Assembly: GCF_000143415.4 (NCBI RefSeq)
Contig: NW_003314281.1
Span: forward strand, 546,833 to 610,832
Reading direction: 5' to 3'
Origin: Selaginella moellendorffii
Taxonomy: Eukaryota; Plantae; Lycopodiophyta
Length of the DNA stretch: 64,000 nucleotides
Of this stretch, positions 19,801 to 35,951 are shown one piece after another (position 1 is the first letter of the stretch; each line of letters opens with the position of its first letter). The notes under the pieces are model-generated. The model saw nothing but the letters and a program-made list of their open reading frames with translations. It was not told the DNA's origin and made no database searches. The translations under genes were made by a program, and so were the position numbers.

Positions 19801-21625
19801 ATGGCGTTGCTCGTCGAGCGACCGAGCGCCTTCTGGATCGAGGTGCGCTCCCAGGCATGGATCGCGCTCCCCATGGTCGGCGTCACGCTCCTCCAATTCG
19901 CCGTCACGACCGTGGCGATCATGTTCGTGGGGCATCTCGGAGAGCTGGAGCTTGCGAGCGCCGCGATCGCTGGATCGCTGGCCAATGTCACGGGCTACAG
20001 CATCCTGGTGAGTGAAATCTTGCGAGAAAGATCGATTGGGGACTGATTCTTGGTGATATTTCGATCGATTTCTCTTCGGCAGCTGGGGCTGGGGAGCGCT
20101 CTCGAGACTCTTTGCGGCCAGGCCTATGGCGCCAAGCTCTACACGCGCCTTGGGGTCTACTTGCAAAGGGCCGTCTTCGTCGAGTTCCTTGCCGCCATTC
20201 CAATCGCGATTGTGTGGTTCTTCATGGAGCACGTCCTCTTGTTCTTTGGCCAAGACCCTGAGATCTCCAAAAACGCCGGGGTTTTCGCGAGATACTTGCT
20301 GCCGGAGCTCTTCGCGTTCGTGCTGCTCCAGCCGCTGGACAAGTTCCTCCAGTCGCAAAGCCAGGTCTACGTGATGCTCGGGGCCTCGTTCATGAATTTG
20401 CTGCTCAACGCTTTGTTCTGCTGGGTGTCGATCTACAAGCTGGGGATGGGAATCAAAGGGGCGGCATTGTCGGCGAGCCTGGCGAGCTGGATCAACGTAT
20501 CAGTTCTTTCCACGGTGGTGGCGTGCACACCCGCTTGTAGGCGTTGCTGGGGTGGACTCTCGATGGAAATGTTTCGAGACCTCAAACAGTTCATGGCTCT
20601 CGCCATTCCTTCTTTGCTCATGCTCTGGTAAGTTTTTGCTTGGTTTATTTTCCAGCTTTGTCAATGCGTGCATCGTTTATTGGATTCTTCCTTGCAGTTT
20701 GGAATGGTGGTCACTTGAGGCTCTTGTTTTACTCTCAGGGCTGCTGCCAGATCCTCAGCTCGAGACCTCGACCTTCACAATTGTGTGAGTGGCTGCTCTT
20801 TTCACTTTTTCCTCAATGGATAAACTTTCGTTTTCTTATTTTCTACTCCAGATTGAACACGATCCAAATTTTCTTCATGATCGCTTATGGCTTGAGTACT
20901 GCTGCAAGGTAAGTCGCATCTTGATTTTGTTTCACAGTGGAGTCAAATTTCGATTTTTATTCTAGTGTCCGTATAAGCAATGCGCTAGGAGCTGGAGAGG
21001 CGAATGCAGCGAAGCTGGCATTCAAAACATCCATATTCTTTGCAGCCATTGACGCTGTAATCGTGAGTACTACTCTGTTCCTGGCCAGGCACAAGCTGGG
21101 GCACTTGTTCAGCAACGAAGCCGAGGTTGTGAGCTCCGTTTCTAAGCTGATGCCGTTCGTGGTTACAATCAGTATTGTGGATGCGTTCCAAGGGGTTGTC
21201 TCAGGTTTGAAAATGGAAATGGCATACGGTGACATGGTTTAAGATTTTTCTGTCTGCTGTGAACAGGTGTTGCTCGCGGATGTGGATGGCAAGCTTTTGC
21301 CGCGTTTGCCAACCTTGGCTCTTATTACGCTGTTGGATTGCCCGTGGCTTACGTGCTGGCCTTCGTTCTACACATGAACGGAAAGGTGGGCCGAAAAGAC
21401 ACTGAGTTTCCTTGTCTGACTCACGTGATTTTTTCACTTTCAGGGCCTGATCATTGGGATTTTGTGTGGCCTTTCGACGCAAGCGATCTCACTGCTCACT
21501 ATTGCTGTAAGAACCAACTGGACCAAGCAGGTATGCCACCATTAGTTTTTAATCGCGGGTCATGTTTTTTATGTTTCGTATTTCTTTCATGCAGGCACAA
21601 AAGGCTTCGGAGCGAATGCAACTGA
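19801..21625 (+). CDS. MATE/DTX efflux transporter, multi-exon
   Basis: MFVGHLGELELASAAIA, GLGSALETLCGQAYGA, LEWWSLE, SVRISNALGAG, SGVARGCGWQ, NLGSYY. Confidence 0.92.
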
Positions 21626-21850
21626 TCACACCGTTACTGAGTTGATACTGCGTGCAACACTGTTACCTGCATTTTTACTCCCGCAGGGAAGAAAGAAATT
21701 CAATAGTTAGTTCTTCAAATATCTATCTGGATTGGTCTTTTATAGCTAACGTGCTTGTTTTGGTGATCTCACTATGTCTGCAAAGTCGAGATGAGGAGGA
21801 GAAAAATCATCACACCCAGGTAAATTTCCTTTATATGTAACTTATAATCT

Positions 21851-22990
21851 TTCAATCTTGACTTTGCAGTGCAGCTCAAGTAATTGAACACATCACCTTT
21901 AGCAGATGGAAGATTGCTGAGCACTTGCAATGGCCAGGAACCATCCTCGTTCTGCATCTTGAGGAGCAAGTCCACATCTATCGTGTTCCGGATTCCAAAA
22001 CGCCTGCTGGATCAAAGTCGGGAATCTCCCTCTTCACTCCGAAAGTCGCGAGGACCCTACCATACGTGAACAAGAAGTCCTCCTGGCTGAGGTAATAGCG
22101 AGTCCCGTATACTTAACAGATATCCGCCGCTTGACAGATATCTCTAGATCGGCGGACAATTGGGTGATCTTCCATGGAGAGCGCATACGCGAAATAGACA
22201 ACGTTGGCTATGACGACCGGATCCACGCGAGGCCGCTCCACGTCCAGGTACGTGAGAAGCTTGTTTTGATCGTTGACGTTCTCGAGACAAATCTCCAGGA
22301 AGTGCATGGCTTGACGTAGAGACACAAGTCGACATGGTGTCGATGTCCGGCGGATAGCGCGAGACGTCGGGATGGCCGCGCTCGATCAGTACCTGGAGAG
22401 ATTTCATCCAGCCAAGAGGAATGATCTCCCGAAGGCAGAGAGAAGATCTCCGAGACGAGCTCCTGCCCGCCGTTGTCAAACAGGTAGAGTGATTTGAGCT
22501 GCTTGGATCTCACATCCTACTTGACTCGATCCATCCCCAGCTCCACAGCTCGAGGCAGCAGGAACCGACGCTTCAAGAAGTCCTGGCAAGCTTTCTTGTT
22601 GGGCGAGGCATACTGGAGAGCGAGCAAGCTCTCGAATGCGTGTAGCGCGACCATCTCCACGCTTTTGTCGACGATCACAGCATGGGACTTGATATCTCCA
22701 AGGAGGGAATCTAGATCGCGGGAGATTGTATCGAAGTTCTTCCAGGGAAACTTGCTCCCACTCTTGTCGAGGAATTTCAATCCATCCGAGGAGCTAGTGA
22801 CAGTAGCTCCTCGCAGCGAAGCGGCCTCGAGCAGCTTGGAATCCGCGAGGGCTGGCTGCTTGAGCTTGAATTTGCCCGAGATTGCGGCAGCGCGATCGAG
22901 CTCCCCGCAAGCATAGGCGAGGAAGGAGTAGCCCTGCGGAGAAGATCTCGCCATCGTCTCCACATCCAAAGCAAGCAAATCATCTTCTGC
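21851..22990 (-). pseudogene. Broken copy 1 of the HAD-like/class II terpene cyclase gene
   Basis: Collinear with 30213-31622 (YPPDIDTMST, RPRVDPVVIANV, QNEDGSWP) but with many deletions and frameshifts. Confidence 0.85.
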
Positions 22991-26179: not shown

Positions 26180-26600
26180 AGAATATTCGTCTCTTGCGGC
26201 TTATAAGGAGAGCTATGTTCAGGTTAGCTCCACAGCCCCGAGAGTAGGGCTTTCTTCTACAGGGAGGGATTGAGGCAAGCGTCTTCGTCGCGGAAGAAGC
26301 AAGCGATTGCGCTGAGTGATAGCGCCGCCAAAAGCATACGGCATTTCCTAGACTTGTGGAACAAACATTACTTGCGCGTGGGATGCAATGGCTACTCCTA
26401 CACCATGGACTACGCGGGCAAGCTAGGATACAATCAATCCTTTGCTTCTCTTCCTTTTCTTGCGAGATAGAAAAGACTTATGGCGAATGCTTCCTTCCTC
26501 TGGCAGATCAAGCGGAGCGCCACGACGAGCTCGTGGAGGACAACGGCGGTCGACCCGCGAGCGCTGATGAGAAAATCATCGGATTCATCGAAGATCGCAT
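26180..26600 (+). pseudogene. 5' fragment of ISCA1, copy a
   Basis: RKKQAIALSDSAAK, GCNGYSYTM, QAERHDELVED match 35200-35780 with deletions. Confidence 0.85.
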
Positions 26601-26814: not shown

Positions 26815-27200
26815 AAGCTGATGCCGTTCGTTGTTGTGGATGCGTTCCTGGCAAGCTTTTGCCGCGTCTGCCAACCTTGGCTCTTATTACGCTGTTGGAT
26901 TGGTCGTGGCTTACGTACTGGCCTTCGTTCACATGAACGGGAAAGGTGGGCCGAAAAGATACAGTGTTTCCTTGTCTGATTCACGTGATTTTTTCGTTTT
27001 CAGGGCCTGATCATTGGGATTCTGTGTGGCCTTTCGACGCAAGCGATCTCACTGCTCACTATTTCTGTAAGAACCAACTGGAACAAGCAGGCATACGGTG
27101 GTCATGAGTTTTTAGTCGGTGGTCATGGTTTTAATGTTTCCTATTTCTTTCACGCAGAGCGAATGCAACTGGTCACACCGTTACTGAGTTGATACCGAGT
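26815..27200 (+). pseudogene. 3' fragment of the MATE gene
   Basis: Near-identical to 21144-21645 including introns, with deletions. Confidence 0.85.
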
Positions 27201-27367
27201 TAACATTCTGACCTGCATTTTTACTCGCTCACGGAAGTAGCAAATTCAAGAGAAGTCCTTTGAAAATCTATTATGATCTCACTATTGTCTGCAATGTCAA
27301 GATGAGGAGGAGAAAACTCATCGCATCCAGGTAGATTTTTTCTATATGCAACTTATAATCGACTCTT

Positions 27368-28700
27368 TCAATCTTGACTTTGCAGTGCTTTCACCGCAAA
27401 GCTCAAGTCCACCACCGAATTGAAGACACCACCTTTAGCAGATGGAAGATTGCTGAGCACTTGCAAAGGCCAGGAACCATCCTCGTTCTGCATCTTGAGC
27501 AGCAAGTCCACATCTATCGTGTTCCGGATTCCAAAACGCCTGCTGAGCAGAATCCTTTTGGCAACCTCGAGTGGCTTCGACTCGGTCTCGTTCCTGATCC
27601 GGTTGACGAGCACCGCCTCCATCGCTCGATAGACAAGATCAAAGTCGGGAATCTCCCTTCTCTCCAAACGTCGCGAGAACCCGGCCATACATGAACAAGA
27701 AGTCCTCCTGGCTGAGGTAATCGCGAGTCCCGATATCCGCCGCTTAACAGATATCTCTGGATCAGATTCTCGTTGTGGCGGACAACCGGGTGATCTTCCA
27801 TGGAGAGCGCATAGGCGAGATAGACAGCGTTGGCTATGACGACCGGATCCACGCGAGGCCTCCACGTCCAGGTACGTGAGAAGCTGGTTTTGATCGTTGA
27901 CGTTCTCGAGACAAATCTCCAGAAAGTGCATAGCTTGCGCGGAGGTGACGAGACTAAGATCAAAAAGTGTGGAGACACAAGTCGACATGGTGTCGATGTC
28001 CGGCGGATATCGCGAGACGTCGTCACCGGAAGGGATGGCCGCGCTCGATCAGTACCTGGAGAGATTTCATCCAGCCGAGAGGAATGATCTCTGGAAGGCA
28101 CCAGGCCGCCACGCAGGGAAAGAAGATCTCGGAGACAAGCTCCTGCCGGCCGTTGTCAAGCAGGTAGAGTGATTTGAGCTGCTTGGATCTCACCTCCTCC
28201 TTGACTCGATCCATCCCCAGCTTCACAGCTCGAGGCAGCAGGAACCGACGCTTCAAGAAGTCCTGGCAAGCTTTCTTGTTGGGCGAGGCATACGGGAGAG
28301 CGAGCAAGCTCTCGAAGGCATGTAGCGCGGCCATCTCCACGCTTTTATCGACAATCACAGCATGGGACCTTATATCTCCAAGGAGGGAATCTAGATCGCG
28401 GGAGATTGTAGCGAAGTTCTTCCAGAGCGACACGGTCCCACTCTTGTGGACGAATATCTATCCATCCGAGGAGCTGCCGCCTCGTTGACTGGAGCAGTGA
28501 CAGTAGCTCCTCGTCTACCTCGCAGCTGGAAGCGGCCTCGAGCAGCATGGATGGCTCCTTGAGCTTGAATTTGCGCAAGATTGTCGAGATTGCGGCAGTG
28601 CGATCGATCTCCCCGAAAGTATAGGCCAAGAAGGAGGAGTGCCTGCGGAGAAGATCTCCCTTGTCTCCACATCCAAGCAAGCAAAGCTAATAATCACCTT
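27368..28700 (-). pseudogene. Broken copy 2 of the HAD-like/class II terpene cyclase gene
   Basis: High identity to 30213-31622 but split across frames by short indels. Confidence 0.88.
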
Positions 28701-29709
28701 CTTAGCTGATCACCAATTTATAGTCTAAAGCGTTGTTAAGAAGAATTTTACTTCTTAATTTGTTTTAGTCAACACTACAGTGGTGGATGCTCGCTTTTAA
28801 TATGGTTTCAAGCTATACATGGTTTGGACATTGAGAATAAGGGGTATTTGTTTCGCTGACAAAATTGTTTAACATTTCACCACTATCCATCCCATGACTT
28901 ACACAGTTCAAGCTTGCTTCTGAATCATGAGCTTTTACCTAGAGAACAAGTTATCTACCACTGAACGAGGCACGCATTGGCAGCTGAAAGTATTCAGTAC
29001 AATACCGAAGTCCATAGAGATGATCAATATTCTACAGACGTCAGCTAGAAAGTGTGTTTGCTAGGTAATGGTTGATGTGTTCATCCCACAAAAACAACTG
29101 TGAGAGATATTTGGCTCGAGAGAGATGCTGCAACTTCCCAGTTCCTCGCTCCGACTGAGTAGGTTAACATTTTGCCACATTTTGTTTTTTGGAAATGTTA
29201 GGATATTCAAGCATATCCACTGTCCTAAGCAAATGTTTAATATAATTTATAAACATTCTTTCCGGATTCTCATAGCTGCTTGGAGGCAACCACTGTCTTG
29301 GTCATGGCTTCGTGTTGACATCCGGCGAGAAAAGAATGTTTATAGATTAAGAATTAAAGACCATTTAAAGAACAGTCTTAAAGAATCATTCTCGCCGCAC
29401 GAAGCCATGACCGAGACAGTGCTTGCTTCCAAGCAGGCGACTCTGCCAGCATCTTGTGGAACATAGACTTGGCATCCCAGGAGATCATTGCATAATCAAA
29501 GTTTATACCGACTCACAAGACCCAAGCAGCAGTTCACAAAGAACCACACGAAGAAATAGAAAAAGAAATCGCGCTGGAACAACAAATGCTGCTTCCTGGC
29601 TGCTTGCAGCAGCCAAAAGAATATTATTATTTAGATTTTGAATTGGTATAATATAATATTGTACCTGACATATTCGAAAACTTTTTCTATCTTTTCTAGA
29701 GGTAGCCCT

Positions 29710-30110
29710 AAAAAGGAATATTCGTCTGATGCGGAGGCTGAAGCGAGAGAGCCGACTCGCTGGGAAGACACCGCAGGTAATGACAGTGCATCCCGGAAGA
29801 AGCAAGCGATTGCGCTAAGAACTCCTACGTTATTGGCAAGCTAGGATACAACCAATCCTTTGCTTCTCTTCCTTTTCTTGCGAGATAGAGAAAGACTTAT
29901 GGCAAATGCTTCCTTCCTCTGGCAGATCAAGCGGAGCGCCACGACGAGGTTTTATCGACCCGCGAGCGCTGATGACAATCATCGGCACAAAGATGGGTTT
30001 CATCTGAAGATCGTCTCAAGTAAGTTTAAAGTTCTTCCTGTCCAAAAAGACACTGTGTTTCCTTGTCTGACTCACGTGATATTTTCGCTTTCAGGGCCTG
30101 ACCATTGGGG
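29710..30110 (+). pseudogene. Chimeric ISCA1 5' fragment (copy b) fused to a MATE intron/exon fragment
   Basis: ISCA1-like up to ...cgtctcaagtaagttt...ttcctg, then MATE-like aaagacactgtgtttccttgtctgactcacgtg...cagggcctgaccattggg. Confidence 0.8.
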
Positions 30111-30212
30111 TGCTAACGTGCTTGTTTTCACTATTGTCATGTCAAGATGAGGAGGAGAAAACTTATCGCATCCAGGTAGATTTTTTCTATATGCAACTTA
30201 TAATCGACTCTT

Positions 30213-31622
30213 TCAATCTTGACTTTGCAGTGCTCTCACCGCAAAGCTCAAGTCCACCACCGAATTGAAGACACCACCTTTAGCAGATGGAAGATTGCTG
30301 AGCACTTGCAAGGGCCAGGAACCATCCTCGTTCTGCATCTTGAGGAGCAAGTCCACATCTATCGTGTTCCGGATTCCAAAGTACCTGCTGAGCAGAATCC
30401 TTTTGGCAACGTCCAGTGGCTTCGACTCGGTCTCGTTCCCGATCCGGTTGACGAGAGCCGCCTCCATCGCTTGATACACGAGATCAAAGTTGGGAATCTC
30501 CCTCTTCTCTCCAAACGTCGCGAGGACCCGGCCATACATGAACAAGAAGTCCTCCTGGCTGAGGTAATAGCGAGTCCCGTATACGAATCCGCCGCTTAAC
30601 AGATATCTCTGGATCAGATTCTCGTTGTGGCGGACAACCGGGTGATCTTCCATGGAGAGCGCATAGGCGAAATAGACAACGTTGGCTATGACGACCGGAT
30701 CCACTCGAGGCCGCTCCAAGTCCAGGTACGTGAGAAGCTGGTTTTGATCGTTGACGTTCTCGAGACAAATCTCCAGAAAGTGCATAGCTTGCGCGGAGGT
30801 GACGAGGCTAAGATCAAAAAGTGTGGAGACACAAGTCGACATGGTGTCGATGTCCGGCGGATAGCGCGAGACGTCGGCACCGAAGTAACCGAAGGGATGG
30901 CCGCGCTCGATCAGTACCTGGAGAGATTCCATCCAGCCGAGAGGAATGATCTCAGGAAGGCACCAGGCCGCCACGCAGGGAAAGAAGATCTCGGAGACGA
31001 GCTCCTGCCGGCCGTTGTCAAGCAGGTAGAGTGATTTGAGCTGCTTGGATCTCACCTCCTCCTTGACTCGATCCATCCCCAGCTTCACAGCTCGAGGCAG
31101 CAGGAACCGACGCTTCAAGAAGTCCTGGCAAGCTTTCTTGTTGGGCGAGGCATACGGGAGAGCGAGCAAGCTCTCGAAGGCATGTAGCGCGGCCATCTCC
31201 ACGCTTTTATCGACAATCACAGCATGGAACCTGATATCTCCAAGGAGGGAATCTAGATCGCGGGAGATTGTAGCGAAGTTCTTCCAGAGCGACCACGGGA
31301 AGAGGTTGTAAACTCGCTCCCACTCTTGTGGAGGAATATCAATCCATCCCAGGAGCTGCTGCCTCGTTGACTGGAGCAGTGACAGTAGCTCCTCGTCCAC
31401 CTCGCAGCTGGAAGCGGCCTCGAGCAGCATGGAATCCAGGAGAGCTGGCTCCTTGAGCTTGAATTTGCGCGAGATTGTCGAGATTGCGGCAGCGCGATCG
31501 AGCTCCCCGCAAGAATAGGCCAAGAAGGAGGAGTGCTGGAGAGCCCTGCGGAGGAGATCTCCCCGGGGGCCACTGTCTCCACATCCGAACTTAAGCAAGC
31601 AAGCAAAACTAATGATTATCAT
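30213..31622 (-). CDS. Intact intronless HAD-like + class II terpene cyclase protein (AstC/DrtB-type drimane cyclase-like)
   Basis: 469 aa; C-terminal half YPPDIDTMS (DxDT[T/M]), LLTYLDLERPRVDPVVIANV, GTRYY, FLFMYGR, QW-like MQNEDGSW, N..V..SFAVRAL; N-terminal half follows a HAD core/cap layout. Confidence 0.78.
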   Translation of the reverse strand: MIIISFACLLKFGCGDSGPRGDLLRRALQHSSFLAYSCGELDRAAAISTISRKFKLKEPALLDSMLLEAASSCEVDEELLSLLQSTRQQLLGWIDIPPQEWERVYNLFPWSLWKNFATISRDLDSLLGDIRFHAVIVDKSVEMAALHAFESLLALPYASPNKKACQDFLKRRFLLPRAVKLGMDRVKEEVRSKQLKSLYLLDNGRQELVSEIFFPCVAAWCLPEIIPLGWMESLQVLIERGHPFGYFGADVSRYPPDIDTMSTCVSTLFDLSLVTSAQAMHFLEICLENVNDQNQLLTYLDLERPRVDPVVIANVVYFAYALSMEDHPVVRHNENLIQRYLLSGGFVYGTRYYLSQEDFLFMYGRVLATFGEKREIPNFDLVYQAMEAALVNRIGNETESKPLDVAKRILLSRYFGIRNTIDVDLLLKMQNEDGSWPLQVLSNLPSAKGGVFNSVVDLSFAVRALQSQD

Positions 31623-32255
31623 CTTCTCAGCTGATCACTTCATGCTATGCAAATTTATAAAGTCTATGACTGAAATTAATTATTTAATCAAAGTCTCATG
31701 CACCGAAGGTGTAAAGGTAATTGCCTGTGTAAGTGGGAGGAGTTTGACAATGTTTTGGATTATAACATTGGAATTTTTCTCCGCTTCTTGCTTTTTAAAC
31801 GGTTCATAATTTCTTGTCAACAAAAGGAGTCATTAAAAATAAAGTTTCTCCCTACAGTCACGGAACTCACTGCCACACATTGCGCTGTCGGTGGAAGGTC
31901 ACTTTTGGAACGTTAGATCGGGGACCTCAGTTCATCTCTCATTTCTGGCAATAGTTTTTGCAGCTATTTGGAGTGAAGGCCAACCTCGCGCGTTTTGGTG
32001 CTGTGGAGCTGTTTAGACTTGCCATCTTGAAAACAAGTTGTCTGCCACAACGAGGCATGCATTGGCAGCTGCATACAGTAGCAAAAACCATAAAAATTAG
32101 AGAAGCAGGTAATGGTTGATCAGTGTGTTTCTGTGGCCCATCCAAAAACACGATGCTTTTGAGTGTGTTCCCTTTAAGAGTTTTTAGTGTTGTGGAATAT
32201 CTTTATTTTAAATTTTATTTTTATAAATCTTAAAATAAAATTATAAAACTTAGTT

Positions 32256-34710
32256 TGTGAGTGCTTAGGATATGGAATGGATGGATTAGATTTAGTCCCA
32301 AATGAACGATTTATATGCTATAGTACTAATTACCAAGTATTACCTAGTTAGGTTTATATATATATATATATATTTTACACCATCCTCCTATTTGGAAGAT
32401 GAAAAGGTGATAACAATAAATTAGATGGAACAAAGTTGTGCAATTGTAAATTACTATAAAATTTTGAAACTCCCACAAAACTGCTAACAAAGTTGCTAAT
32501 AACCATGATTGAAATAAAACCCAAAACCATGGCGTAAACATCAATTGATTACAAAATCCCAATAAACCAATTATAACTTCATGTGCACTTGCCAAATGCT
32601 TAATCTAACCTCAAAGTTATAATTTTAAACCAAAGTAAAAAATTTTGAGAACCACTATAGTCTATGAAATGTTATTGCAACAAATAATATATCCCACATT
32701 TAAGTTTGCTAACCAATAATCCTTCGAGACCATTGTGAGTAAGACTTATGACCATAAGTAGAATTTGACTTTGCATCTTCCTTTCAATCAACATCCAAGG
32801 ATTATATTAACTTAAACTTATGACCTTTATATTTGTTTAGCACTGCACATGGGAGGTTGTATTCACTCCATTTATCTTTGACATCCTCTTTATCCCTTTA
32901 AAGGAAAAAAATGTTTTGAAACACTAGCTCCATTTAGACTCACTACATTCATTCTCACCTTATTATTTATATTTGACTTCACTTCACTATTGATTTTGTT
33001 TAGTCTCATTATATCAAAGTTGAATATTCCATTCAAACTCACTATGTTTGTCCTCATTCCACAATCCATATTATTTGTCTTTGCTCAATTACTGTATTTG
33101 TTTGTCCTCACTCTATTGTTGAGGCCAAACTCCCATCCATCCCCTCTACCCCCTCCTTCGAAAAAAATAAAATTGGAAAAGGAATTTATAGCAGCTAGCA
33201 ATGTAGAAGTAAGGAAATCAAAAGAAAGACATGTATTCAAAACTTAGAAAATAAAAACTTTTTATTATAAATTACTTTGGCAAGCATAATATAAGCAAAA
33301 TATTCATATCGCTCAACCTCGTCAACACATAATTCAACACTTGAGATAGGAAAATTAATAATAATATACATAAACTCTTCAACAGTAACAATAAAACAAA
33401 GGCTCTCAATAGCACTAACAAGTAGGAACACAATTTAAAATTCTTGCTAAAGTGACTCAACTGTTGGAATATAAAAATATTTAACACTAGAATTGATCAA
33501 AGACTCTGCTAACAAAAGTACAACTTCATGTACATACTTAACATCCAAATTAGTATAAGGAAGACATAAAACACTCAATTCAATATTGGGTTGAGAATGA
33601 AAATCATGAAAGTCACAAATAATCACCATGCTATGAAAAGAAAACACTACAGAGGAGGAAGAAATACTAAGAATATAAAAAGTTGGCTCAAGCCGAGAAA
33701 TAAAAAAAATGTTGAAAAAGAACTGAAAGTAAAGAGAAAAGATCAGATGACAAATTTAAGGATTGATACTACCTTCTGAAATCTCCACTATCAAAGCTAT
33801 CTTTATAATAATCAAGCTTGTCAAAATGATCTAGAATCCATTTGAGTTACACGAGTAACTTTGGTAGAGAGTCATTCGGGACATCTACTAACCCTTTAAA
33901 GGAAGCTCAGAAGTAACTTTGTTAAGATTTTTATTGACATAGGTGTTTCAGATAATTTTGTGGTTATAAACATAGTCCGGCAAGCTAAACTAATAGTGCA
34001 GTAGTTGGGTGAACAAAGGATTATAGAGTTTGTTCAAGATATATATTATCTTCCCATAAACTTGATTTTTAAACATTCTCCAAGAATTGGGTTACATTAT
34101 TTATAACTTGCCAATTGATATGACAATCATGCTTCATATCAATGAGAGATAGCAAAACACCAAGAACAGAATAAATCATATGATCACATCTTATGAAAGT
34201 TGGAGACATTAACACACTAAAGATGGTATAACACCAATATAATCACACCCTATAGTACCAAAAAATTTAATCTAACAAGCAGCATTAATAGCATCAAGTG
34301 ATATATTCCTTGATCAATCATGGCGTGACATGGTAGAAAAAAAGAATGCAATGATGGTCAAAAGAAAGAGTAGATCTAAGTATAGTGATAACTAGAGTTC
34401 TAGATCTTGCAAAAGTTAATACAAATTTAGATATAAAAAAGAATGAAGAAATAAAAAAAAAAGTATAATCCCAAACACTAAAGCAAAATATTGCCAAAAA
34501 AATTTTACCCTTTAGAAATAAATTGCAATACCCCTCATCTTCACTAATGTGAATGCTCAAGATATGGGAATAAATATATTAATTAGTGCTTATATACAAG
34601 AATTGATGGATTAGATTCAGTCTTAAATGGACAGTCTATATACTATAGTACTATAATTAATGTATTACCTAGCTAGTGTAATACATATATATACATACAT
34701 ATATTTACAA
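32256..34710 (+). mobile_element. Degenerate LTR-retrotransposon-like remnant
   Basis: Diverged direct repeats at ~32256-32378 and ~34548-34710 bracket AT-rich DNA containing a retroviral-protease-like peptide NFVKIFIDIGVSDNFV (~33915-33962). Confidence 0.4.
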
Positions 34711-35402: not shown

Positions 35403-35951
35403 ATGGCAGCAGCGTGCGCCGCCAGGGAGGGATTGAGGCAAGCCTCCTCGTCCCGGAAGAAGCAAGCGATTGCGCTGAGCGACAGCGCGGCCAAGAGGAT
35501 CCGGCAATTGCTAGACTTGCGGAACAAAGATTACTTGCGCGTGGGTGTCAAGGTCCGGGGATGCAATGGCTACTCCTACACCATGAACTACGCAGGCAAG
35601 CCTCAGTCCTTTGCTTCTCTTCCTTTTCTTGCGAGAGAGAGAAAAGCTTATCTTCCTCTTGCAGATCAAGCCGAGCGCCACGATGAGCTCGTGGAGGACA
35701 AAGGCGTCAAGGTTTTGATCGACCCGCGAGCGCTGATGAAGATCATCGGCACCAAGATGGATTTCATCGAAGATCGTCTCAAGTAAGTTTGAAGTTCTTC
35801 CTGGACGAGAGAAAAGTTCCAAAGTTGTCAAGAAATCCCAGCTCCAATTCTGAGATCTCTCAATCCTCGCAGGTCGGAATTCGTGTTTCTAAATCCCAAC
35901 GCTACCGGCACTTGCGGCTGCGGTGAATCCTTCACGGCAAAGGAGAAGTAA
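35403..35951 (+). CDS. ISCA1: Iron-sulfur assembly A-type carrier IscA-like 1 (mitochondrial type), 3 exons
   Basis: RGCNGYSYTMNY, GTKMDFIEDRLKSEFVFLNPNATGTCGCGESF. Confidence 0.93.

Follow-up and report, generated by a model that had tools for sequence, protein, structure and literature searches.

A putative bacterium-derived, AstC-like class II terpene cyclase gene with a degenerate HAD-like domain in the lycophyte Selaginella moellendorffii

The 64,000-nucleotide stretch of Selaginella moellendorffii DNA analysed here (contig NW_003314281.1, positions 546,833 to 610,832; hereafter, the window) contains an AstC-like HAD-terpene cyclase gene, which we designate copy A. Copy A occupies positions 30213–31622 of the minus strand and consists of an intact, intronless, ATG-initiated open reading frame (ORF) of 469 amino acids, with an in-frame stop codon five codons upstream of the ATG. 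The encoded protein includes, in this order, the motifs PPDIDTMS (residues 255–262), TYLDLERPRVDPVVIANV (residues 298–315), GTRYY..FLF (residues 349–361, the GTRYY part being residues 349–353), NRIG (residues 393–396), and QNEDGSW (residues 430–436). D257-I-D259-T260 forms the general acid motif, its codons being at 30843–30854 of the minus strand, and the next residue is M261. An earlier, sequence-only reading of this DNA had proposed a microbial-type class II cyclase in an intronless ORF amid plant genes; all of the motifs on which it relied were located in the order that it gave.

The larger ORFs of the window belong to ordinary plant families, including a TPT transporter, Slu7, PPR proteins, a GULLO-like oxidase, and DUF674; further plant-type ORFs encode a class 3 lipase, a MATE transporter, a B-lectin protein, and a carotenoid-cleavage-like fragment. 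Copy A is flanked by the TPT, Slu7, PPR, GULLO-like, and other plant-type ORFs; the sequence-only reading had likewise placed it among ordinary plant genes. The GC content at third codon positions (GC3) of copy A is 0.69, which is inside the host range of 0.49–0.76. The locus is present on both haplotypes (the other haplotype is GL377651, locus L001), and the database protein SELMODRAFT_426804 of S. moellendorffii, which is 97% identical to copy A, is its allele. Contamination or misassembly of the locus is ruled out by the plant genes on both sides, the presence of three tandem copies (described below), the presence on both haplotypes, and the host-like GC3. Neither a P450 nor a phosphatase gene was found among the 20 large window ORFs scanned, and a biosynthetic gene cluster around copy A is not supported.

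Sequence comparison of the copy A protein with the proteins of the PDB using phmmer revealed that residues 252–465 matched AsDMS, the drimenol synthase of Aquimarina spongiae (PDB 9MHS, 9M7D-F), with an E value of 1.5e-21, which is beyond chance; AstC, the drim-8-ene-11-yl diphosphate synthase of Aspergillus oryzae (PDB 22TZ/22TY), was matched with an E value of 2.6e-16. The Pfam family PF28380 (AstC-like_C) is recorded in the public entry of the 97% identical allele. Scans of the copy A protein against a local copy of Pfam (E up to 1) and against NCBIfam gave no match; since this local Pfam copy does not include PF28380, the null scan is no evidence against family membership. The Terpene_synth, Terpene_synth_C, and Terpene_syn_C_2 domains, which have the DDxxD/NSE motifs, were also not found in the protein in the Pfam scan at E up to 1.

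An AlphaFold2 model of the copy A protein, built with a 50-sequence alignment, had a mean pLDDT of 94.4 and a pTM of 0.88. The ten best PDB matches of this model in Foldseek were all AsDMS chains, which overlaid both domains over ~510 columns (E ~1e-23), so that AsDMS is the best match among solved proteins in both sequence and structure; the structure prediction thereby bore out the assignment of the sequence-only reading. Next in order were single-β class II cyclases (such as MstE), βγ drimenyl diphosphate synthases, and, after these, chains of soluble epoxide hydrolase, which matched over ~215 columns. The HAD-like region of soluble epoxide hydrolase is the nearest structural neighbour of the AstC HAD domain (PMC13244436). 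The model includes two domains: (i) a degenerate HAD-like domain (approximately residues 1–170; 31113–31622, minus strand), delimited in alignment A2; and (ii) a class II terpene cyclase β domain (residues 172–469, corresponding to the HMM envelope; 30216–31109, minus strand). Structure matches in the ESM Atlas covered residues ~173–465. According to the Foldseek results, the cyclase fold of copy A is that of a β-domain rather than an α-domain. The βγ drimenyl diphosphate synthases of the SsDMS type (PDB 7XQ4; Foldseek E ~1e-5) share class II protonation chemistry on farnesyl diphosphate (FPP), but they are βγ didomain proteins with a DxDD motif and Mg-dependent diphosphate binding and do not have a HAD domain.

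To locate functional residues, published mutagenesis of AsDMS and AstC was transferred onto copy A through alignments. The acid/base pair (D331/D333 in AsDMS and D271/D273 in AstC) corresponds to D257/D259 in the Selaginella protein, the essential threonine (AstC T274) to T260, the acid-activating asparagine (AstC N324) to N314, and the acid-activating tyrosine (AsDMS Y427 and AstC Y361) to Y353. The diphosphate ligands Y373, R378, R380, and Y426 of AsDMS correspond to Y299, R304, R306, and Y352, a region that was also aligned with AstC K314/R316. D259 is invariant in all 50 homologues compared, and D257, N314, Y352, Y353, and W436 are nearly so. The acid motif of HAD-like terpene cyclases is defined as DxDT (PMC13244436, PMC12232559), and the role of this motif has been described (PMC13244436, PMC12365925). 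The copy A protein has the complete DxDT motif. The sequence-only reading had regarded DxDTM as a variant that might change the product; the methionine is present, but M261 lies outside the defined motif and is common to the environmental sister sequence (described below). The residues F509/A511/F518 that steer the product in the AsDMS pocket are replaced by S442/L444/V451, and the pocket residues of the Selaginella protein differ from those of both AsDMS and AncC.

Judged by its sequence, its modelled fold, and its catalytic residues, the copy A protein is a true AstC-like HAD-terpene cyclase with the HAD-TCβ architecture, as had been proposed. Genes of the microbial terpene synthase-like (MTPSL) type in Selaginella and other non-seed plants are a precedent for microbe-type terpene enzymes that reached lycophytes by horizontal transfer. 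However, MTPSLs are class I α-domain enzymes that ionise the diphosphate, whereas the Selaginella protein has a class II β-domain and no class I motif. The copy A protein is unrelated to canonical plant terpene synthases (TPSs) and to class I MTPSLs; the β-domain fold and the null result for the Pfam terpene-synthase domains agree with the sequence-only reading on this point.

The HAD-like domain has lost its canonical catalytic residues. In alignment A2, (i) the nucleophile aspartate of HAD motif I (AsDMS D43) is replaced by phenylalanine, and residues 1–15 of copy A include no acidic residue; (ii) the Ser-Asn of motif II is replaced by Ile-Asp; (iii) the position of the motif III lysine falls inside a 13-residue deletion; and (iv) the Asp-Asp of motif IV is replaced by Asp-Lys. 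An upstream exon that could supply motif I was considered and excluded, because residue 1 of copy A already aligns with the HAD β1 strand of its relatives in alignment A2 and an in-frame stop codon lies upstream. The β1 strand is found at residues 2–5 of the model. Therefore, the copy A ORF is complete and no exon is missing. Bifunctional cyclase-phosphatases of the AsDMS, DrtB, and AacA type have intact HAD motifs I to IV, which copy A does not have.

Comparison with AsDMS revealed that the equivalents of D331, D333, Y427, Y373, R378, R380, and Y426 are all kept in the Selaginella protein. A difference lies in the HAD domain: AsDMS has an active HAD phosphatase (D43, N139, K171, and D195/D196) and yields a free alcohol, whereas the corresponding Selaginella positions are Phe, Asp (with the preceding Ser replaced by Ile), the deletion, and Asp-Lys. 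In this respect, copy A resembles AstC, which has the same two-domain architecture of a HAD-like domain and a TCβ domain, the DxDT acid/base pair, the activating asparagine and tyrosine, and a basic diphosphate ligand. The AstC HAD-like domain also does not have the canonical metal-binding and nucleophile residues, and its product stays phosphorylated, as would be expected for Selaginella. AstC has non-canonical HAD residues and no phosphatase activity and releases its product as a diphosphate, and the HAD domain functions as a cap in a dimer arranged head-to-tail (PMC13244436). Differences from AstC are that (i) the identity is only ~23–25% and the Selaginella protein lies outside the fungal clade; (ii) the Selaginella HAD domain is shorter, with the 13-residue deletion at motif III; (iii) the acid motif is followed by methionine in Selaginella and by threonine in AstC; and (iv) the Selaginella gene resides in a plant and has no neighbouring biosynthetic cluster. 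Since the HAD catalytic residues are lost, no built-in phosphatase is expected in the Selaginella protein, and by analogy with AstC its predicted product would be a bicyclic prenyl diphosphate rather than an alcohol. The protein does not have an N-terminal extension; therefore, a cytosolic location, which the sequence-only reading had also supposed, is plausible.

HMMER was run exhaustively against 1.84 billion representative proteins and gave 326 matches at E up to 0.001, plants being covered through their annotated proteins. The close matches were Selaginella paralogues only, and no other plant protein among the 326 matches was close to copy A. The next match, P0005, is 35% identical to copy A over residues 7–379 and shares its N-terminus and the DIDTMS motif. 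It is encoded by L002 (L002:1-1474), a 1474-nt JGI metagenome contig (Ga0210252_10618831) of sample 3300030548, which has 33.5% GC, an AATAAA signal near its 3′ end, and one frameshift near nt 1110–1130, and which looks like a eukaryotic mRNA. Another relative, P0006 (L003:3-3560), is 25% identical to copy A over the full length and has the motif DIDTS; its contig is gene-dense, has 48% GC, and is bacterial. The P0006 gene lies between genes for a class I terpene synthase (PF19086, with an NDxxSxxxE motif) and an SAM methyltransferase; these three genes are on one strand with gaps of ~72 nt and resemble a terpene operon. Among the matches listed, word-indexed protein searches returned only Selaginella proteins, the Aspergillus sequence P0004, the JGI sequence P0033, which was already a row in the query alignment, and the weak JGI match P0153. 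A profile scan of genome contigs with alignment A3 found no relative, and a metagenome profile scan gave a single weak match, L004.

In a maximum-likelihood tree of 61 cyclase domains (LG+C20+F+G4), Selaginella and L002 were paired with support of 100/99, and this pair was joined by P0006 (98/90) and then by a clade of five rows in which every named member is a Streptomyces sequence (99/93). The two named fungal (Aspergillus) sequences fall in another clade, of 37 rows, which was supported at 100/97. The sequence-only reading had compared copy A with AstC and DrtB; the family assignment stands, but the nearest relatives are L002 and the bacterial clade with Streptomyces names rather than AstC, DrtB, or AsDMS. 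Its expectation of nesting among microbial proteins holds for the bacterial sequences. When the plant pair was forced into the fungal clade, the cost was 13.6 log-likelihood units (p 0.14 in the approximately unbiased (AU) test). Since this difference is not significant, a bacterial donor of copy A is favoured, not proven, by the sequence evidence. The missing close plant homologue, the missing introns, the nesting among bacterial sequences, and the host-like composition together make horizontal acquisition the best reading, and the patchy distribution of the family agrees with the transfer previously proposed. The sequence-only reading had also mentioned related enzymes from ferns; no fern relatives were found, although fern genomes were not directly searched, and no literature was found on HAD-like terpene cyclases in Selaginella, under its locus tags, or in ferns or liverworts.

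The nearest named relatives, the Streptomyces proteins WP_400006577, WP_133900367, and WP_362890005, align with copy A over the full length with 23–24% identity. Their fused HAD-like domain is also without the nucleophile aspartate, but their acid motif is DxDD instead of DxDT. In addition, WP_400006577 and WP_133900367 are each encoded directly downstream of a separate HAD hydrolase gene; in both genomes examined, this hydrolase has an intact FDLDGTL motif, and the two-gene cassettes lie at L005:7104-9482 and L006/L007:7159-9545. In strain KS 21, where the cassette is on two contigs, the HAD and cyclase genes overlap by 4 nt, and the cassette adjoins IS110 and Mu-type transposase genes. Such an arrangement is consistent with a two-gene mobile module whose phosphatase would act in trans. 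No separate HAD gene of the Streptomyces type is present in the window.

Two further copies of the cyclase gene lie on the minus strand on the lower side of copy A. Copy B (27279–28713), identified by tblastn and from a list of indels, is 96% identical to copy A at the nucleotide level and is a tandem pseudogene with frame-breaking deletions of 10, 20, 8, 2, 5, and 2 nt, its tblastn pieces being in different frames. Copy C (21745–22978; ~93% identity) is an older tandem pseudogene in which many deletions, one of them of 91 nt, break the frame. A narrower delimitation puts copy B at ~27371–28683 and copy C at ~21883–22954. The other haplotype has the same three copies, and its copies B and C are broken too. 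Upstream of the ATG, copies A and B stop being homologous after 16 nt (at 31638 and 28713, respectively), that is to say, the duplicates never had the upstream region of copy A, which may explain their decay.

Between the two haplotypes, copy A (1410 nt) has 27 substitutions and 0 indel events, copy B has 64 substitutions and 10 indel events, and copy C has 102 substitutions and 12 indel events. The flanks have approximately one indel per 130 nt, a density that predicts ~11 indels in the ORF against the 0 seen; thus, the frame integrity of copy A appears to be maintained, and the zero indels between haplotypes argue for constraint on copy A. The allelic ratio of nonsynonymous to synonymous substitution rates (dN/dS) of copy A is 0.60 (9 synonymous and 18 nonsynonymous among 27 differences); the N-terminal half alone gives 0.86 and the cyclase half 0.29. 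Neither this ratio nor the one for the antisense frame (below) separated the competing explanations. Polarised fixed changes (synonymous:nonsynonymous) are 3:1 in the A lineage, 5:7 in the B lineage, and 14:32 in the C lineage. By global alignment, the substitution divergence is 1.9% in the ORF and ~2–5% in the flanks. A five- to nine-fold lower divergence of the ORF obtained from blastn was rejected as an artefact of gapped flank alignments; only the indel contrast stands.

Transcription of the locus was analysed with contigs of four RNA-like runs from four studies (21–31 Mb of contigs each, RNA being guessed), which were aligned to positions 27000–32400. The joints of these Logan contigs in the four runs revealed a spliced RNA on the plus strand (29754–31635) that covers the whole ORF of copy A. 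Its introns lie at 29840–29925 (GC..AG) and at 30020–30094, 30176–30230, 30564–30617, 30726–30776, and 31026–31082 (GT..AG), the last of which is often retained. When every equivalent cut was checked on both strands, the six joints had good consensus on the plus strand; introns of the minus strand were rejected, because none of the equivalent cuts allows a GT..AG there. The spliced RNA therefore runs antisense to the cyclase ORF. In sequence, the contigs correspond to the other allele, for example with GTA>ACC at 30381–30383, which corresponds to Y414G. The three antisense introns inside the ORF have lengths of 54, 51, and 57 nt, each divisible by three; these introns and the 18 in-ORF bases of a fourth have 0 differences between haplotypes in 180 nt (~3.6 expected at the rate of the ORF itself), and the haplotypes also agree in the three splice-site pairs that are fully within the ORF. 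For the other haplotype, GenBank annotates an overlapping opposite-strand gene model of 314 amino acids. However, the long antisense frame has no methionine until near its end and a dN/dS of 0.55, and the plus-strand RNA is read as a non-coding natural antisense transcript. A TATAAAT box, a candidate sense promoter, lies at 31653–31659 of the minus strand, 31–37 nt upstream of the ATG, and two runs have RNA contigs whose ends, at 31632 and 31635, lie 24–27 nt downstream of this box. A start of sense transcription would fit these ends, and the antisense RNA ending there at its 3′ side would fit them equally well.

Taken together, copy A is probably a gene of bacterial origin that resides in the nuclear genome of S. 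moellendorffii and encodes a two-domain AstC-like class II cyclase with a dead HAD cap. After transfer of a bacterial-type gene into the nuclear genome, the β domain would bind FPP and protonate its terminal double bond, and closure of two rings would yield a bicyclic diphosphate of the drimane type; the dead HAD domain would act as a structural cap only, as in AstC, and release of an alcohol would require an unlinked phosphatase. Tandem duplication was followed by the decay of two copies, with copy A kept indel-free, and the dominant spliced antisense transcript may repress copy A. An extension of this scheme, in which a vascular plant makes cytosolic bicyclic prenyl diphosphates through a bacterium-derived cyclase independent of canonical TPSs and gated by an antisense transcript, is tentative, and the smaller Ser/Leu/Val pocket residues could give a product or a substrate chain length unlike those of characterised drimane synthases. 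Several points weigh against the main reading of copy A as a bacterium-derived cyclase gene: (i) two of the three copies are dead; (ii) the allelic dN/dS of copy A is not significantly different from neutral, and the divergence of the ORF is no lower than that of parts of the flank; (iii) a fungal affinity is not rejected by the AU test (p 0.14); (iv) since the pocket residues F509/A511/F518 differ, the substrate and product of the Selaginella enzyme are not predictable, and the relatives in its clade are all uncharacterised; and (v) no contig covers 30564–30617 in any of the four runs or 30726–30776 in runs X5 and X10, although a sense mRNA must contain both segments. In runs X1 and X3, the bin of 30726–30776 is reached by a contig that leaves the ORF at the donor 30726 and continues in copy-C-like letters. 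Bin depths equal the depth of the spliced contig multiplied by the covered fraction (in X5, 82.6 × 127/181 = 58.0) and are thus explained by spliced contigs, leaving 30564–30617 uncovered in all four runs.

An alternative is that copy A is a relic, that is, an acquired and once functional gene whose sense strand is now silent, whose locus yields antisense RNA only, and whose ORF is intact because the silencing is recent. We regard this as possible though rather unlikely. The antisense RNA was the only spliced RNA assembled in the four runs, two of the three tandem copies are pseudogenes on both haplotypes, the allelic dN/dS reaches 0.86 in the N-terminal half, and the upstream region of copy A, beyond the end of homology 16 nt from the ATG, is not in the duplicates. 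For the same reasons (two pseudogenes, and RNA contigs that are spliced antisense rather than sense), the additional terpenoid route that the sequence-only reading had envisaged for this lineage is not established. However, recent silencing fits poorly with zero indels in 1410 nt against approximately one per 130 nt in the pseudogenes and flanks, with the intact catalytic residues, and with the dN/dS of 0.29 in the cyclase half, and the TATA box is rightly spaced from the contig ends. The missing sense path is weak evidence: minor variants are lost in Logan contigs, strand information is absent from them, and sense expression is thus neither shown nor excluded. If, instead, the plus-strand RNA were the functional product, whether it acts as a regulatory RNA (antisense or long non-coding) or encodes a protein overprinted on the cyclase gene, the cyclase ORF would be incidental. 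Six canonical introns in four studies, the 314-residue opposite-strand gene model, and the conserved splice-site pairs would agree with this, but the homology and the confident two-domain fold of the minus-strand ORF cannot be incidental, the antisense frame is Met-less until near its end with a dN/dS no better than that of the sense frame, and the difference-free introns weakly fit coding constraint on the sense strand; this explanation is improbable. Still harder to sustain is vertical inheritance from an ancient green-plant or eukaryotic ancestor with loss nearly everywhere else, which we consider very improbable. The mRNA-like L002, with its 35–38% identity, the same DIDTM motif, and the shared N-terminus, would be its best witness. 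Against it stand the absence of any other close plant protein among the 326 matches, the nesting of the Selaginella/L002 pair inside bacterial sequences (98/90 and 99/93), the intronless gene, and the GC content of L002, which at 33.5% is far from the 46–58% of the host coding ORFs in the window. Such a low GC content is unlike land-plant coding sequence in general.

In the papers searched, HAD-like class II terpene cyclases are described solely from bacteria and fungi, and the plant drimane synthases mentioned there are unrelated class I enzymes. On the present sequence evidence, copy A appears to be the first plant-resident HAD-like class II terpene cyclase, and it belongs to a dead-HAD clade. 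An intact member of this family in a lycophyte chromosome would represent a second, mechanistically different entry of a microbial terpene enzyme into early vascular plants, beside the MTPSLs. The tree also indicates an uncharacterised clade of fused dead-HAD cyclases; in the two Streptomyces genomes examined, these cyclases are accompanied by a separate HAD gene, and one member of the clade is environmental and eukaryote-like. The sense/antisense arrangement at copy A provides a tractable test of the use versus the silencing of a transferred gene.

Some contigs join exons of copy A to copy B sequence or have copy-C-like letters at the same splice positions (joints 30561>27764, 30720>27918, and 30726>30826, with 27764–28399), which suggests plus-strand transcription and splicing of the pseudogene copies as well, or a merging of paralogues by the assembler. 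A MATE transporter gene (20050–21242, plus strand) is arranged tail-to-tail with copy C. Short segments from downstream of this gene recur next to copy B, next to copy A, and near 35.6 kb (21391–21458, 26417–26582, 26951–27018, 29835–30109, and 35604–35803), and the first three exons of the antisense RNA fall in these repeated segments. A further run, X14, which is labelled as a different organism, contained 23% of the sampled words of the stretch, which may reflect a close relative with the same locus or a labelling issue. A 1218-nt contig with a depth of 893 in run X1 ends at 27002–27093 and extends beyond the mapped stretch, which points to strong expression of a transcript immediately below copy B.

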